DNA of 64,000 nucleotides from Cycas panzhihuaensis (GCA_023213395.1 CM041465.1:133059741-133123740); one strand, 5' to 3'. Positions 40,201 through 63,479 are shown, counted from the stretch's first letter. Notes: generated from the letters alone by a model not told the origin. Numbers and translations: made by a program.

Positions 40201-40491
40201 ATTTGGGTTGATGTTAGGGTGCTATATTCCATCTTTTTGGTCAATTTTAAGATTGTGTCTATTTGGGTTGGTACTAGGGTGGCATATGTCATTCTTTGGG
40301 ATACTTTTAAGTTAGATATTTTTGTTGTTACCAAGATCATATATACTACTCAATTTTGGTTAGTAATATATGAGTTTTTTGGTTAGTTATATAATAATAT
40401 GACATTAATCCTAAAACTAACCCAGTTATCTTTATGTTGGTCTATCTATCCTACCCTTAGGCCCAATAATGAAAAAGAAAAAGGAAAATAA

Positions 40492-43400
40492 TATTAGGGA
40501 TCCAACTCCTAACTCATCTTCTCTTATATCTTCTACTTCTTCTCTCTCTTATATCTTCTATTTCTTCTACTTCTTCCCTTTTTTTAATATCCTACATGCA
40601 TAAGTAGAAGGTTGTGTAGTGGTCATTGAGCACTATATATATTCATGTAATATCCCACATTCATAAGAAGGAGGTTGTGTAGTGAGCATAGAGCCATATA
40701 TATATTTATGTAATCCTTAGAGTATGGTATCTTAAATATCATTGTTATTACACGTAATTGGGAGGTTGCCCCCTTGAAGGGTATTACAATACAAGTTCTC
40801 TTTTTGGAGTTATTTGCTTATTATGTTGGTGTGCAATTATCATTAAGGAGTGGTGTCCTATCAAGTGGTATTAGAGCGGTTGGTCCATACCTTGTGGGAG
40901 AGTCAAAGGTACTAAATAATTAATTGTTTTCCATCAGTACCTATTCTCATTTAATTTTTGCTTAACTACTTTACTTTTTAGGGGTAGATAATACTGTAAT
41001 CAGGTAGCTACCATAACATTGCCATCAGGCAATTTTCTTTTGCATTTAGATAAAGACCCTGTGCCGGGGGTCTATAAATATCACGAGGATCTGTTGTTTT
41101 GGTCTAAGCGCATTGTGGCTTTTTTGTCCCTTGCATGAAGGACTGGAGATCACACTCCTGAATCAAACCTTAGATAGAACTCAGCTATGGAATTGTGCAT
41201 CCATGTACCTGCAGGTATATAGGAGGACCCCCTAGATAGGTCTTCCTAGTATAAGTAACTATAGGAAACCTATTGACTATCTGCAATTTATAGTGCATTA
41301 GTAAGCGGTTAGCCCCGAGAAGTTATTCTCCACGTACCCTAGAGACAGGGTAATACGACTGCTGAATAGAGTGTTTGCCTTTATAGGTTGATATTATTTA
41401 TGACTAGGATTAGCATTTCGAAGGGCCTACAAACTAGACAAGCCCATACCTAGTGTACTTGGTCAGTTTATTAGTGGTTTGTGTGCATCTAGTCAGACGG
41501 TGAGTCAATTATCATCAATTTGTTAAATCCAGTGTGTCTGGCCAATTTGTCATCAGCTCATGCACATATAGTTAGTCAGCCAACTAGTGATCAAAAAGAA
41601 AAAAGAAGTAAAAAGTAAAAAAATAAAAAGTAAAAAATAAAAAAGAAGCAAAAAGCAAAAAAAAAGAAAGTAAAAAAATAAAAATAAAAAGAAGAAAAAA
41701 AGAAAAGAAAAGAAAAATCCATATTACCTCATTGTAAAATATTGGGGATAACAGTATATAGACACCCCATCAAATCCTTTTCATTCACATTTACTAACTA
41801 GGATTCAACTTAGATCTTGTGAATAAATGGCCCCTAAGATGAACCCAAGTTGGACTCAAGATCTCAATAATGCTACCACATAACTTCGAGGAGATATATT
41901 ACAAATCCAAAATGATTTCAATGAAAAATTTAAAGCAGTAATGTCAGAGCTCACATCCATGAAACCTTTTAAGGAATAAAAGATTGACTTTGATGATACT
42001 ACTCACATAGGTGAGGGCCACTTCATTAAAGAATATGAAAGTAATGATGATAGGCATTTCTGTCTAAACTTCCTTCCCAAAGTAGAAATCAAGAAGTTCA
42101 ATAGCACAGATGTACATACCTGGATCACCCAAATTGAACAATACTTTTCTCTTCATCAAGTTCCAGCAGATAAGAAGATCCCTCTTACTTCTCTACACAT
42201 GGAAACTGAACCCTACCAATGGTACCAATGGGTTATGAAAATAATTGGTGGGCTTAGTTATCAATGGGAAGGTTTTGTCAAGGATCTTACAGCTCAATAT
42301 GATAGTACCTATAATCATGATCACTTTAACCAATTAGCTAAAGTCAGACAGGAGGGGACTGTTTCAACTTATATAGTAGAATACCAATGTCTCTCCACAA
42401 GGGTTGATGGTCTTTGTCAGAATAAATTACTTGAGTTATACATTGGTGGGTTACGAGATGATATTAGACATGAGTTGTGACTCTAAAACTATCAATTTTG
42501 CTCGACATATTGAAGTAAAAAATAAGGCATCCTGACCCCTCTAATGAACATTCCCAGAAAAGTGACCACAAATTCAGGTTCCTAGTGTGCGACAGATGAC
42601 TTCCTAAGAGATGGATTAGAAACACTTAAAAGGGTTATGTTTTCATTGTAACTAAAAGTGGAATAAAGACCATCAGTGTCCTGAACAACGTTTATTCATA
42701 ATTGAGGATGTCTAAGATGATGAACCAGTAGAGGAAGCCTCATTAGAGCCAAAAAATAATGATTATGACCCACCTGAGGAGGAAGAAGAGGATACTACTA
42801 CTATAGCTATGCATGCCCTAGCTAGAATTGCAGCCCCTTAGACACTCAAACTCATTAGGTAAATTAAGAAAAGGAAGGTGGTTGTCCTCATAGGTTTTGG
42901 GAGCATCCACAATTTCATTAATTGGAAACTTGTTGAACTCAACTGTTTTCCATTTCCTGTCAAAAATTTCCAAGTTATGGTGGCTAATAAAGGGACACTC
43001 GCTTGCGGGGAAAAATGTCACATCAAGTTACAGATGGGTGACTATCACCTCTCCACTTTTATGTATGCCATTCTCATTGGAGGAGTTGATGTTGTATTAG
43101 AGGTACAATGGATCAAACCACTAGGGACCATTCAACTAAATATGCGAGAGCTCTTCATCTGATTTACTTCTGAAGGAATTGACTATCAATTGAATGGGAT
43201 CATTCCTCCTTCAACCCAAATCATCAGCTCAGACTGTATGGAGAGGCTCATTAAAAAGGGTGGTATAGGAATCATTGCCAAATGTTATGCTCTGGAAGGT
43301 TAGGAACTTCCAACAGAAGGGGACATTCTCTAAGATGATGGTATACCAAATGACTTAAAATTAGTACTTCACTGCCACAACCAAGTCTTTCAGGATATTC

Positions 43401-46400
43401 CTCAAGGTCTTCCCTCAATACGTGACCAAGATCATAACATTGACTTGGTAGCTGGAAGTAATTCTCCTTGTATTTTACCATACCGGTATCCCTACTAGTA
43501 AAAGAATGAAATTGAACGACTAGTTCAAGAACTTCTTAATGCTGGTACTATTAGGGAAAGCAAAAGCACTTTTTCTTCCCTAGTGATTTTAGTAAGCAAA
43601 AAAGATGGCTTATTTCGCATGTGTGTAGACTACCATGAGCTCAATAAGATAACCATCAAGGATAAATTTCCTATACCAATTATCGATGAACTCCATGGAG
43701 CAACGTTCTTCACATCATTAGACTTGCGGTCATGATACCATCAAATTAGGATCAAGGCAGAGGATGTTCATAAAACTACATTTCATACACATGAAGGACA
43801 TTATGAATTTTTAGTCATGCCATTTGGCTTGACTAATGCCCCATCCACCTTTTAAGGACTCATGAACAAACTCTTTTGGTCTTACTTAAGGAAGTTCATG
43901 TTAATATTTTTTAATGACATTCTAATCTTTAGTTATACATAGGAAGACCATCTTCAACATGTTGATAAGGCATTATAGGTGTATGCAAGCAACTAACTTT
44001 ATGCAAAAAAATTAAAATGTCAATTTGGGCGAACTGAAATAGAATATTTGGGCCATATTATCTCTCAAGAATGAGTCAAGGTGAATCCTAAGAAAATTAC
44101 AATTATCACAAACTGGCCTAAACCCAAAAACATCAAGGGCCTTTGTGGATTCTTAGGAATCACAGGGTATTATCAAAAGTTTGTTCAGGGCTATGCAAGG
44201 ATTGCTTCCCCTTTAATCAACTTATTAAAAAAGGATTCCTTTCATTGGAATGATAAGGCCTCTAAAGCATTTGAATACTTAAAGGTGGCTTAACTACCAC
44301 ACTAATCTTTGCAACACCAAACTTTACAAAGAGCTTTACCATTTAATGTGATGCATCGGGGCAAGGTATTAGAGCAGTCTTAATGTAAGAAAGGAAACCT
44401 TTGGCCTTTGAAAGTCATCAACTTACACCCAAGGAACATGTCAAATCCACCTATGAGAAGGAGATGTTAGCAATTCTCCTTGCAGTTAGGAAATGACAAC
44501 AATATTTATTGGGAACATATTTCCAAATTAAAATAGACCATGATAGCTTAAAATATTTCCTATCTCAAAGGACGACATCTGAGGAACAATAAAAATAGGT
44601 CACCAAAATACAAGCTTTTGACTTTGAAATCATATAGAAAAAAGGAAAGGATAATATAGTTGCTAATGCTTTATCTCATAAGGAAGAAGGCTCTACACTA
44701 TATTCTATCACCACAATTAATCCCTCTTAGATAGTAGTCGCTAAGCAAGAATGGGATTAGGACCCCTTTACAAAGCAGATCATTTAAGACCTTCAAGCTG
44801 GAGTAAGGCATTCAACCCATTATATATGGTCTGCAAATATTCTCTAGTACAAGAATCGAACATATATATACCCTCACTCTAGCCTCAAGGATCAAATTTT
44901 ACATGATACACATCCCTCTTCAATAGTAGGTCACTCAGGGTTCCTACGAACATACCACCATTTAAAACAGTCTTTCTTTTGGAAGGGACAAAAAGAAGAT
45001 GTAAAGATATATGTTTCCTCATGTGAAAATTTTCAATGACATAAAATAGAAATAATCAAGTCTCCAAGATTGCTACAACCCCTTCCCATACCAAATCAAC
45101 GATGGGAAGAAACTTCTATAGACTTCATTATGGGTCTGCCCAAGTCAGAAGAAAAAGATGCTATATTGGTGGTTGTTGATAGACTAACCAAATCTCATTT
45201 TTGTGGCATTCAAGCCACATATAAGGCAAAGCAAATTATTGAGATCTTTTTAAAGGATATACACAGGTTGTATGACATGCCCAAATGTATAGTCAGTGAT
45301 CGGGACTCTAAGTTTACCAGTAACTTTTAGACAGAACTCTTCCATCTACTTGGTACTAAACTGACAATGAGCTCATCCTACCATCCACAAACAGATGGTC
45401 AAACTGAGGTGGTTAATAAGTGCCTTGAAGGATACCTTCATTGTTATGCTTCAGAGAAGTAGGGCCAGTGGCATCATTGACTTCCTTTAGTAGAATGGTA
45501 GTATAATACAACTTATCATGCATCAATAGGAATGACGCTATTCCAATCATTATATGACTATGAACCACCCACACTTAGGAGCTATGCCATAATCAGTTCT
45601 AAGGTTCAAGCTGTTGAGGACTACATCCAACAAACAACACAGATTCTTAATCTACTTAAGGAAACTTTGAATCTTGTACAAAATTGGGTGAAATAACATG
45701 TAGATAAAGGGCAAAGTGAATGAGCATTTCAACCAGGTAACTGGGTATACTTACAGGTGCAATCGTATAAGCAGGCATCTCTTAAACATGATGGGCAACA
45801 TAAATTACAACCTCAATTTTATGGGCCTTACAAAATTCTCAAGAAGATTGGTAAAGTTTCATATGCCTTGGACTTACCACCACTATCAAGGATCCATAAT
45901 GTCTTTCATGTTTCGTGTCTCAAGAGGGTAATTGGGTAATAAATACAAGTTTAAATAGAATTACCTATCTTAAATGAGGAGAGGAAACTTCAACTCATTC
46001 CAGAATGTATCATCGACTAAAGAATTTGACATCTACGATCAAGGAAAATCATTGAGTATCTTATCAAATGGAAACAACTTCCACGAGAAGATGCAACCTG
46101 GGAGAATGAGCAATTTATCCTAGAGCACCCTAAGATCACGTAGCTTTAAGGGCAAAGTTTTTTTAAGCGGGGGGGGGTGTTGTTAGGGATCCAACCCTTA
46201 ACTTACCTTCTCTTATATCTTCTACTTCTTCTCTCTCTTATATCTTCTATTTCTTCTACTTCTTCCCTTTTCTTAATATTCCATATGCATAAGTAGCAGG
46301 TTGTGTAGTGGTCATTGAGCACTATATATATTTATGTAATATCCCACATGCATAAGAAGGAGGTTGTGTAGTGAGCATAGAGTCATATATATATTTATAT

Positions 46401-46552
46401 AATCCTTAGAGTATGGTATCTTAAATATCATAGTTATTGCATGTAATTGGGAGGTTGCCCCCTCGAAGGGTATTGCAATACAAATGCTCTTTTTAGAGTT
46501 ATTTGCTTATTATGTTGGTGTGCAATTATCATTAAGGAGTGGTATCCTATCA
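40492..46552 (+). mobile_element. Complete but defective chromovirus-type (Reina-like) Gypsy F
   Basis: 372-bp LTRs 40492-40863 and 46181-46552; perfect TSD AATAA; PBS TGGTATTAGAGC at 40866; G-run PPT at ~46169-46177; gag-PR-RT-RH-INT order; chromodomain EYLIKWKQLPREDATWE at ~46050-46105. Confidence 0.96.
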
Positions 46553-48029
46553 AATAACTTATGAAGGGCAAGGTTGATAATATAGTTGGTAATTGATCTC
46601 TCTATTGTAGTATGATCTAATATGTACAAGGTCCACTTAATTAATATTGGCTTTAATCCTATTGAGCGGTGCTACCCCCTCCATCTTAACTTTATTTAAA
46701 GGTAGCACTCAAAGGTTCCTGATTATTTTATTTGTATATTATCCACATACACATAATAAGATTTATGTATAGTTGAGTTTTTGTACCCTACCTTCCTAGC
46801 AATAAACAATAAAGAATATTTTACTTGAGCATTCATAGGAACTAACCTTAGGAATAAAGGGCATACTAGACAATAAGTCAAATTGCATAGTAAGTGGTAC
46901 ATCAACCCTACATATTAATAATAGGCTAACCTACCAAGCATAATTAGTGAAGAAAATGGTTGGAAGGTGGCCACACTTTGGTATGCCAGTACCCATACTT
47001 GATCAATGTTTAGATATGGTTAAATTTTCTATGAATTATGCTAATTATGTTAGTAGTGTTAAGTTGATAAAGAGGCATAAGACATAATACAAGATCATAC
47101 TATATTATTTATGGTCAACCATTGGCATGTGATTAAAGGGCATGCTCACGTTAGGTTAGATGTTTGGGGTTTTATGTTTTGAAATCTTATATGAATATTC
47201 TAGTTATTAATGAATTACTAAAGAATCATGGAATTGCCTATGTAATCATCTTTAGTTATATTATGATGTTATATTAATTATATATTGATCCTTCCATGAG
47301 CATTTCAATCAAATGCAACATGATATTATAGTTATTTCATTGTATATGACCATTTCATTAATAACATGACTCTCTTGTAAAGGAGAGTATTCTTAAACCT
47401 AGGCAACATATCCTTAGTTATGGTCATCACTTTAATGCAATTATATCATAACCCCATCATGGTTAACCTTAGTTCTAGAGGGGAACAATGATGAAGCTGA
47501 AGTCTTAGTAAAAAGTGTTTATGTCTAAGGGAGGAAATAAGTACCTTAGTTATTTGGAATATAGTTGGTTTTAACCAAAATTGGAAATCTAGGGGATATT
47601 CCACTACCATGAAAAGGGCATCCTAAAGAAAAATTTGAGTCTACATGAGAGAAGGCATTATCGTAGGATACCAAAAGGGCAAATCAATTTAAAAAGGCAA
47701 ATAATAACAACAAAAATAAGGGCATACCTAGTAAGCAAAAGGAGGAAGAGCCTATAGTGGCTATCAATGATTAGGTTAAGGCCACTCCAATCCAAAAGTA
47801 GGGTCAAGAGAATAGGACATTCCCCTAATAGAAGTGAGTAATAACATAACCCTTGAAACTTACCATCTATAATGCCCTAATTCTATGAGTATACTTGTAA
47901 AGGATATAAGTACCAGGGAGTGTTTAACAAACTTAGAGAGGGAAGATAATGAAGAAAGTAGAGAGGTGAGTTAGGACCATAGTAAAGATAGGAAGAGGAA
48001 GTAATTAAGTTAGTGTTAAGAATTTCTAA

Positions 48030-60738: not shown

Positions 60739-63479
60739 TGTGATAGGAGAAGGAGAAAAACATTACTATGGAAGAGTGTTATATGACCACATGTGACTAG
60801 CAGAACTACGATGCTATCACTCATGGTTAATACACTAGAAGGCTATTAAAGGCACCAATGAAATGAAAGGTCATTTGGCTTGCCAATGGGATTATAGGGA
60901 GGAGGCCCTCTTTTGTCTATATAAGGGCCTTGAATTATAAAGGAAGGTTTTTATGTAATTATTTTTTCTTAAGAGATTGGTACTTTAGTACTCTTAAGTT
61001 ATCTTTGGTGTTCATTTGTGCTCTTTGGTGATATTTAATTCTATGTTTGGTTTCTATTAATAATATGGTATTGCATTTTCCTACTCATTTTCTTCGTATT
61101 TCCATTATGTGTGTGAACAAAAGTAGGATAGTTGTATCCCAACTGGTGTCAGAGCTTAGTTTCTAGATCTAATAGGAAGCAATAAGCTTGAAGGAAGCTA
61201 AGGAGAAAGGGAAAAATTCCCTTGGTATATCACTATAACCCTTCTCTATAGTTCTATTCATTTTTATTTTAAGTGGCATCTACTTAAATTTCTTATAAGT
61301 CTATAAAGTTGTAAGTGGGTAGTAAAGTCCTACCCTATCCCACCCCTTTCCCCTAGTGGTTAGATAGAGACCTTGTGCTAAGGGTCTATAAACATCATGG
61401 GGATCTATTATTCTGAGCTAAGCATTCATGGTTAAAAAACTGTATGTGATATGAAGTGGTACAACAATGCTTGTGTAAGCTTTAAGAAGAACCTAACTAC
61501 ATATGTGAGCCTCCACATACTTTCAGGTATATAAGAGGACCCCTTTAGGTTTCTTCATTCTGACCTAGAATAAGAAACCAATTAATAATTTGTCCCTCTA
61601 TGGTACATGGGTTAGCAGTTAGCGCTTGAAAGTTACCCTACTTGAATATCCTTGCATGGCTATAAACCTTATAGGGATGCACATTACTCCATAGGTAGTT
61701 CCCTAAGATATTAGGTTAAGCTCTAGTAATAACAAGGAAGTTTACATAGGGCCTATAAAGCCAAACACTCCTTTGTCAGTGTTTAGTAGACTCCCTCTAA
61801 TCATCTCTATCGCTTCCCTAATAAAATTATTTATTACAAAATTGCTTATTTTACTATATTTTTGAAATTAAAATCATCTATTACCAAGACTATTATAACT
61901 TCTAGTGTAATCCTCTAAAGCTACTATAAATCTAAACACACTGCTACATATACAAAGATATACAGATTGAACCTACAATAATGGTACCACCTAAATATTA
62001 ATAGTACATAAGTAATATGATAATATATATCAACAAAGCATAAAAGATTTGATTATTCCTATCTAAACCTTCAACTAAAAATTCTAAATTCAATACTTGT
62101 TAAGCACCCTTGTTCTTAGTCCACTCTCTCATTAGAAAAAAAAAGGCAAAAGAGTTTGCAAGGTCACTTTAATGAATGCTTCTCTATTTTTAACAAAACC
62201 TATATCATTGGACTCATGACAAAAAAAATATTATTAAAAAAAAAAGGCCACCCCAAAATCTGTAATATGACCACTTAAAATTTTTAGAATGAGTCATTTC
62301 ATTTTAAATTTACCATTGCTTCTTAAAACTTTTGCTGTTCAAACTCTAATATACACTTTGAAATGCTACATTCAAGTAGGGAAAAAAAAAATATAAATAC
62401 TCTTACTTTGAAACCACTTGTAACAAGCTTAACCTTGTTACCTCTTTAACATATAAAACTATAACAAGATAACCAAAATTAGATGGAGGTGGATGAAGTA
62501 GAAGATGGAAGTGAAAAGTGTTAAAAGAGAACCAAAGGTTACCAAAGTGAACCCTAAGAGAAGTATATTTATCAACATATCATTACAATGAGTAGGGTGC
62601 CATATTTATAGAAGGATCACCTATATTATATTATTCTACCTTTAAGCTAATTAATCCAACTCCCCTAACAAACTAATTTTTTCAAATCAAATAAGGAAAT
62701 AATTAAGTAGCCAAGTAGGTTATATTGTATTCATCTACAATATCTAAGCCCTAACAAACATTGACCTTGATATTCAACATATCCTTAATAAATATTAAGC
62801 TATTTTCACCCCCTGTCAGCTAGCCTCCCACTAGATCATGGGTGTTACCACCCTATTGAGTTGAAAAATCCCCATGGCCCGATCAATCTCTAACCTTATA
62901 GAAATTCATACTTTTAAAAGAATGGGATTAAAAAGATTACCAATGAGTTAATGAAAATAGAGATAATTCAATCCAATAAAAGCCCATATGCTGGCCCTAT
63001 TACGTCAGTTAAAAAAAGGGATGGCTTATTTAGGTTATGTGTCAATTATCAAGAACTTAATAAAATAACTATAAAAAATAAATTTTCTACCCCCAAAAGT
63101 GATGACATGTTAGATGAGATCGATGGCACCATAGTCTTTACCAAGTTAGATCTTTAATCTAAATACTATTAAATACTAATTACACTAGAAAGCCATCACA
63201 AAATTGTATTATGTACACACTATAACTAGTTTGAATTTCATAGTATGCCTTTTAGTTTATGCAATACCCTAGCCATGTTTTAATTCCTTATGAACAAGAT
63301 ATTTAATCCTCACCTTAGGAAATTTATTATTGTTTTCTTTGATGACATACTCATTTATATCATAAGCATGGCCGTCCATACCTACCATTTAAAGACAATC
63401 CTAAAAATTTGGGGGCAAACACCAATTATACACTGTCTCTAAGTGTTAGTTTAATAAATCTAATATTACGAACCTAATT
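60739..63479 (+). mobile_element. Decayed Gypsy H (5' LTR 60739-61141, PBS, conserved leader, RT fragment)
   Basis: TGTGATA...TATCCCA termini; PBS TGGTGTCAGAGC at 61144; RT ORF 62951-63157 ([18 protein letters not shown]) and VFFDDILIY at ~63330-63360. Confidence 0.75.

Follow-up and report, generated by a model that had tools for sequence, protein, structure and literature searches.

Conserved non-coding blocks in the 5' leaders of two Gypsy retrotransposons of Cycas panzhihuaensis as candidate cis-acting signals

In retroviruses, in Ty1 (PMC6844567) and in the barley element BARE (PMC3735527), the interval from the primer binding site (PBS) to gag harbors the packaging signal (Psi, or PSI) and the dimerisation initiation site (DIS). 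Such leader signals are kept in BARE2, though this element is unable to make Gag (PMC3735527). Here we analyzed the same interval in two Gypsy elements, termed F and H, which lie in a stretch of 64,000 nucleotides from Cycas panzhihuaensis (GCA_023213395.1 CM041465.1:133059741-133123740), hereafter the window. An earlier sequence-only reading had proposed that the two leaders share colinear non-coding blocks, and that these blocks adopt a covarying multi-domain RNA fold; the former part of the proposal stands, whereas the latter is not supported. Gypsy elements fill gymnosperm genomes. To our knowledge, scant information exists on the cis signals for packaging, dimerisation or the choice between translation and replication in plant retrotransposons with long terminal repeats (LTRs), and almost none for Gypsy.

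Colinear blocks in two otherwise diverged leaders

Comparison of F against H using blastn revealed four high-scoring segment pairs, two of which fall in the leader (41046-41109 against 61360-61423, 80% identity, E 1.5e-10; 41194-41231 against 61506-61543, 82%) and two in the reverse-transcriptase (RT) core (76% and 68%). As had been stated for this pair, the LTRs gave no segment pair at all, with the reservation that the 5' LTR of H could only be inferred because its 3' copy falls outside the window; nor did blastn find any F-LTR-like sequence upstream of the H PBS. The two leader segments correspond to blocks 1 and 2, whose two long motif patterns match these two leaders only within the 64 kb, against an expectation of 0 matches. 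A third leader copy, sought in the window by nhmmer with a profile of F and H, was not found. The weaker blocks are also colinear, including GTTAGC (41308 in F, 61618 in H) and GGGCCTA (41423 and 61749; GGGCCTAYAAA). Block 1 begins 168 nt (F) and 204 nt (H) past a PBS of the initiator methionine tRNA (tRNA-iMet) type, in agreement with the positions first reported. Altogether, the blocks span 168-560 nt after the PBS and lie at least 390 nt ahead of the gag ATG of F, within the PBS-gag interval of the genomic RNA.

The blocks differ sharply from their surroundings in the kind of substitution that separates F from H. The 65 nt of block 1 comprise 51 identical positions, 13 transitions and a single transversion (2% transversions), and block 2 comprises 32 identical positions, five transitions and three transversions (3/40, 7%). 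By contrast, the spacer at 41111-41193 has 39 identical positions, 18 transitions and 22 transversions (22/79, 28%), and the stretch at 41327-41419 reaches 42% transversions. In the RT of the same two elements, transversions amount to 19-21%, 8-17% and 32-38% at codon positions 1, 2 and 3, respectively. Judged by transversions, the blocks therefore lie below even RT position 2 and far below position 3. The observed/expected ratio of CpG is 0.45 in the leader core of F (41046-41445) and 0.07 in that of H (61360-61770), the latter being much more deaminated; because CpG is so depleted, most of the transitions between F and H probably arose by deamination after insertion, in dead copies.

The spacing of the blocks is kept as well. 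The distance from block 1 to block 2 is 166 nt in F and 164 nt in H, and that from block 2 to block 3 is 96 and 94 nt, a difference of 2 nt in each case, whereas the distances from the PBS to block 1 and from block 3 to block 5 differ by 36 and 16 nt. Near-invariant blocks alternate sharply with saturated spacers, a pattern that speaks against both a patch introduced by recombination and simple descent; the low transversion rates, combined with the kept spacing of blocks 1 to 3, point to a compact unit, spanning ~290 nt in F (41046-41330), under purifying selection. A decayed coding region was ruled out, since the tblastx matches, which contain stops, are spread over all six frames with comparable strength. 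As judged from these substitution patterns, the conservation of the leader blocks is very probably real and selected. It indicates purifying selection on the primary sequence of the blocks.

Within block 2 of F, positions 41206-41217 form a perfect palindrome of 12 nt, TACCTGCAGGTA, extendable to ~18 nt with G-U pairs; its counterpart in H reads TACTTTCAGGTA, with the center broken. Both copies also have an upstream ATG (ATGAAG, 41135 and 61451) inside the otherwise diverged spacer. It opens an upstream open reading frame (uORF) of eight codons in F (41135-41161) and 27 codons in H (61451-61534), the stop of the latter lying inside the TATATAA of block 2. Compared to the number expected from composition, ATG triplets are depleted in the leader of F (five against 13.4, 40878-41590) but not in that of H (ten against 12.9).

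The gag of F likely starts at the ATG at 41827, which gives a leader of ~950 nt. As chromovirus internal regions are described as nearly filled by coding sequence (PMC6317226), a leader of this length is unusual for the lineage. It also includes an A-rich low-complexity tract at 41590-41720.

RNA structure of the leaders

Folding of the whole block-bearing stretch of the leader gave minimum free energies little different from those of dinucleotide shuffles, with z-scores of -1.60 for F (411 nt) and -0.46 for H (422 nt), compared to -0.83 and +0.18 for the antisense strands. The proposed global multi-domain fold of 400 nt was therefore rejected, as the whole stretch performs no better than shuffled sequence and the structure conservation index (SCI) is 0.18-0.56. 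A two-sequence consensus fold, computed in 120-column windows, exceeded column shuffles in only two of them, 41040-41157 (z -2.65, SCI 0.56) and 41158-41277 (z -2.55), a signal that is modest given the 16 tests made. In these two windows the antisense consensus is weaker (z -1.2 and -0.87), and elsewhere the SCI is ~0.2 or less.

Four hairpins had been described for the two leaders, of which hairpins 1 and 2 are indeed stable in both copies (Table 1). The stem of hairpin 1 is invariant at five of its seven pairs, and its loops, GUGCCG in F and GUGCUA in H, are not palindromic. The lower stem of hairpin 2 is homologous sequence in F and H, apart from a single C-G to U-A replacement and a shift in the place of the bulged C; the upper stem in H has no counterpart in F. 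Its arms are thus related by C/U transitions and a shifted bulge, and do not represent independent solutions. The third hairpin, AGTAAGC paired with GGGTTAGC, has z-scores of -1.15 and +0.21 and differs in shape between the copies; the fourth, TACCCT..AGGGTA, is present in F only. In addition, a hairpin over block 2, with CAGGUAUAUA in its 3' arm, can form in both copies but is not significant (z -0.88 and -1.29).

The claim that the hairpins keep their positions while covarying in sequence fared less well. Among 28 stem pairs compared between F and H, 17 are invariant, five have changed on one side and still pair, five are broken in H when read in the register of F, and one alone, the C-G to U-A pair of hairpin 2, is compensatory. 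RNAalifold proposes nine double changes, but with two sequences, which provide no statistical power for covariation, the program fits noise; the shuffle control is likewise powerless (241/500). Since the arms of hairpin 2 are homologous and the double changes are a fit to noise, there is no justification for describing the stems as covarying.

Block 1 and block 2 are complementary to each other in both copies. The 3' arm of hairpin 1 (GGGGGUCU) and the 5' arm of hairpin 2 are alternative partners for block 2 (GGAGGACCCCC), again in both copies. These predicted alternative pairings would permit a conformational switch, but prove nothing. The leaders match no Rfam family: the window contains no match at the gathering score, and the leaders have only chance-level matches (E >= 1). 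A tRNA-like gene reading of the leader was also rejected.

Table 1. Coordinates of the leader blocks, hairpins and other features of elements F and H in the window
Feature	Element	Coordinates	Strand	Description
Block 1	F	41046-41110	+	hairpin 1 (41054-41073), then TATAAAT (41073-41079), then GGATCT..CTAAGC
Block 1	H	61360-61424	+	hairpin 1 (61368-61387), TATAAAC (61387-61393)
Block 2	F	41194-41235	+	palindrome TACCTGCAGGTA; weak hairpin 41200-41224; CAG|GT 41212-41216; TATATAG 41216-41222; GGAGGACCCCC
Block 2	H	61506-61547	+	weak hairpin 61510-61538; CAG|GT 61524-61528; TATATAAG 61528-61535
Block 3	F	41302-41326	+	AGC.GTTAGC...AAGTTA; weakly conserved; no supported hairpin
Block 3	H	61612-61636	+	counterpart of F block 3
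Block 5	F	41423-41434	+	GGGCCTACAAAC
Block 5	H	61749-61760	+	GGGCCTATAAAG
Hairpin 1	F	41054-41073	+	7 bp, 6-nt loop; z -2.65
Hairpin 1	H	61368-61387	+	7 bp, 6-nt loop; z -2.51
Hairpin 2	F	41235-41274	+	13 bp, bulged C, 13-nt loop; -12.8 kcal/mol, z -2.55
Hairpin 2	H	61548-61579	+	14 bp, bulged C, 3-nt loop; -13.3 kcal/mol, z -4.67
5' LTR	F	40487-40863	+	~377 bp; blastn 40494-40864 against 46183-46553, 94% over 371 bp; true start near 40487
PBS	F	40866-40877	+	TGGTATTAGAGC; tRNA-iMet type, 1 mismatch
gag piece	F	41980-42477	+	Pfam Ty3_capsid and Retrotrans_gag; Ginkgo gag relatives
Chromodomain	F	46030-46140	+	Pfam Chromo, E 2.5e-9
3' LTR	F	46183-46553	+	blastn against F 5' LTR
PBS	H	61144-61155	+	TGGTGTCAGAGC; tRNA-iMet type
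RT remnant	H	62894-63412	+	tblastx, Pfam RVT_1; sole coding similarity to F

Possible roles of the blocks

On account of where the blocks lie, the two hairpins common to both copies, the asymmetry of folding between the strands and the kept spacing, we consider a cis-acting signal in the sense genomic RNA, serving packaging or dimerisation, the most likely single reading of the blocks; both the RNA level and the role are inferred, and the reading is put forward tentatively, at rather less than an even chance. On this proposal, selection would have maintained the blocks as cis signals within the 5' leader (~950 nt) of a single chromovirus lineage, and they would make up a compact unit of ~290 nt composed of hairpin 1, the long bulged hairpin 2 and a weaker hairpin around block 2. 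The invariant single-stranded flanks, namely UCUR repeats, GGAGGACCCC and, in F, a palindromic CCUGCAGG core, might be recognized by Gag/nucleocapsid and pair two genomes. Re-pairing of block 2 with an arm of hairpin 1 or hairpin 2 could then switch the RNA between a translated and a packaged form.

Several observations weigh against such a signal. Only two sequences are compared, with the one compensatory pair and with five of the 11 varying stem pairs broken; the region as a whole gives no thermodynamic signal; the palindrome is intact in F only; and both strong blocks contain TATA-box consensus motifs. Moreover, the primary sequence is kept including loops and flanks, which suits coevolution of Gag with its RNA less well than it suits a site bound by a host factor that does not vary. 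The ~290-nt unit might be imagined as a platform for invariant host factors, in the form of a palindrome-plus-TATA core promoter and/or a splice donor in a hairpin, that acts within the leader to generate one RNA pool for translation only and another for packaging, and is common to several gymnosperm retrotransposon families. This more far-reaching proposal appears unlikely to us. If it were true, the idea of two RNA pools would extend from barley BARE to Gypsy.

The host-factor alternatives can also be considered separately. At the level of DNA, the blocks may serve as internal core promoters of the TATA type, one or several, producing a translation-only RNA that lacks the PBS; this is doubtful, yet the TATA motifs and the strictness with which primary sequence is kept make it an alternative to be taken seriously. 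Block 1 would supply a palindromic element followed by TATAAATA and ~30 nt to a start near CTAAGC, and block 2 would supply a second box, TATATA(A/G)G. The TATA-box consensus indeed occurs at conserved positions in both copies, as TATAAAT at 41073 and TATAAAC at 61387, and as TATATAG at 41216 and TATATAAG at 61528 (GGGTCTATAAATA, CAGGTATATAGG). The 713-nt leader of F (40878-41590) contains only two TATAWA motifs, one each in blocks 1 and 2, a distribution with a chance of ~0.014, calculated post hoc. In block 1, the palindrome (its core being CCGG in F) directly precedes the TATA, and ~30 conserved nt follow the TATA; in H, block 5 (GGGCCTATAAAG) provides a third TATA-like box. Three related metagenome contigs that look fungal (L002:925-944, L004:4402-4421, L006:411-430) have the 20-mer CAGGTATATAAGAGGACCCC ~70 nt 5' of an ATG, chance matches in which it reads as a TATA-box region. 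Conservation of primary sequence is, in addition, what binding of the host TATA-binding protein (TBP) and transcription factor TFIID would lead one to expect. There are precedents: in BARE, two TATA boxes yield separate RNA pools, the TATA2 RNA having no R domain and serving translation only (PMC3735527), and a conserved palindrome built around CGG-CCG precedes cTATAAATA in the LTRs of Sireviruses (PMC2829016). However, both precedents sit inside LTRs and not in leaders. A promoter would also leave unexplained the two or three serial TATA boxes, the 2-nt spacing constraint, hairpin 2 and block 3, and does not account for the better folding of the sense strand compared to the antisense. Equally at the level of host factors, the spliceosome could use block 2 as a leader splice site. 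It might be a major donor, such as retroviruses and BARE1 have, with the sequence CAG|GUAUAU, or else an acceptor with YYUNCAG|GU; splicing would set a translated RNA apart from the genome that is packaged unspliced. The CAG|GTAT of block 2 is invariant in both copies, makes a good acceptor when read the other way and equals the proven donor of BARE1, CAG/GTAT (PMC3735527); H has CTAAC ~30 nt upstream, and F has a pyrimidine tract and then TACTAAC-TAG|G just 5' of the gag ATG. Nevertheless, splicing leaves block 1, the best-kept block, unexplained, GUAUAU fits the donor consensus at seven of nine positions, and no reason is known why this element, with its single open reading frame, would require a subgenomic RNA, so that we regard this role as improbable.

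The remaining alternatives receive as little credit or less. Blocks without any function of their own, be they leftovers of common descent, a template-switch patch or a captured piece of LTR, would suit the defective, gag-less state of H. Exchange or neutral descent would, however, give even similarity, whereas the observed pattern is blocky (65 nt with one transversion, 83 nt with 22, 42 nt with three) and the block spacing is kept too; we judge this reading to be as improbable as splicing. A translation element, either an internal ribosome entry site (IRES) or a landing structure for ribosome shunting as in plant pararetroviruses, might be suspected from the long leader, the conserved upstream AUG (ATGAAG) and the stable hairpins. 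It is nonetheless very improbable: nothing was found in support of the IRES first suggested, the AUG depletion of the F leader fits ribosome scanning, no strong stem follows closely after the uORF, a global fold is absent, and 400-780 nt separate the blocks from gag downstream. The suggestion of an unrecognized self-cleaving ribozyme is scarcely credible, for beyond the conserved hairpins nothing speaks for it; relaxed filters and a threshold of E <= 5 still brought no match to any Rfam ribozyme family, the only weak matches being at chance level (E >= 1), and a conserved multi-helix junction is lacking. A packaging or dimerisation signal thus remains the reading that we prefer.

Host elements and comparison with known systems

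Element F is a structurally complete but decayed Ty3/gypsy chromovirus of 6.07 kb (40487-46552), with the target site duplication AATAA read directly at both flanks. Its domains follow the order gag, protease, RT, integrase (rve), SH3_Tf2-1 and Chromo in Pfam, and all chromovirus features are present; it is the C-terminal chromodomain that identifies F as a chromovirus. Ginkgo biloba proteins are the closest public relatives of its gag, with ~60% identity. Parts of 40494-42500 were found in DNA sequencing runs from 12 organisms and 12 studies, which suggests that the F family is common to a species-rich group. In the same run search, no run recorded as RNA contains this stretch, and five runs with a low share are RNA only by guess.

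Element H is read from its 5' part alone, the remainder being cut by another element and by the end of the window. Its RT remnant is 43-49% identical to the RT of F in translation (tblastx), and it is the only part of a gag-pol region or chromodomain seen in the portion of H within the window. Between the leader and this remnant (61770-62900) lies 1.1 kb of AT-rich sequence (29.5% GC), in which similarity to gag and protease was sought and not found. Accordingly, H is either a gag-less relative, non-autonomous or rearranged, or carries a replaced segment.

Searches beyond the window added no further copy. The block 2 pattern has six matches in metagenome contigs, all by chance (bacterial ribosome-binding and rpsL regions, a fungal promoter) and without other similarity to the leader, and two DNA patterns and two gag-based scans detected no homologue in viral contigs. 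In the literature searched, neither the motif strings of the blocks nor an account of a leader module in chromoviruses turned up. Signals of this kind are known, as leader PSI/DIS elements, conserved non-coding motifs and dual-TATA RNA pools, and this particular module is not described in the searched literature. As a 65-nt non-coding sequence in which two families differ by fewer transversions than at even the best preserved codon positions of the RT core, block 1 offers a concrete candidate for such a cis signal that lends itself to testing. Block 1 could, moreover, serve as a lineage marker in annotating decayed or gag-less copies.

Among described systems, the PSI/DIS of the barley Copia elements BARE1 and BARE2 and the palindromes (PAL) and pseudoknot of Ty1 (PMC3735527, PMC6844567) resemble the blocks in being non-coding, in lying between PBS and gag and in combining short hairpins with palindromes. 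They belong to another superfamily, however, and have no sequence in common with the blocks. Compared to these signals, the function of the blocks is putative, their palindrome is intact in F only, and their conservation extends over families with RTs that are only ~45-50% identical. The retroviral leader, exemplified by stem-loops SL1-SL3 of HIV-1 and by Psi of murine leukemia virus (MLV) with its UCUG sites, shares the order of PBS, hairpins, a CAG|GU donor-like site in a stem, and gag, as well as possible alternative pairings and repeated UCUR motifs; nevertheless, there is no homology, and the loop palindromes are not conserved in F and H. The Sirevirus motifs (PMC2829016) are similar in that a palindrome with a CCGG core directly precedes a canonical TATA and is kept across very diverged elements, but they lie in the LTR of Copia elements instead of the leader of Gypsy chromoviruses. 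The dual TATA of BARE (PMC3735527) follows the same logic as an internal promoter in the leader would, with the difference that its TATA2 lies inside the LTR.

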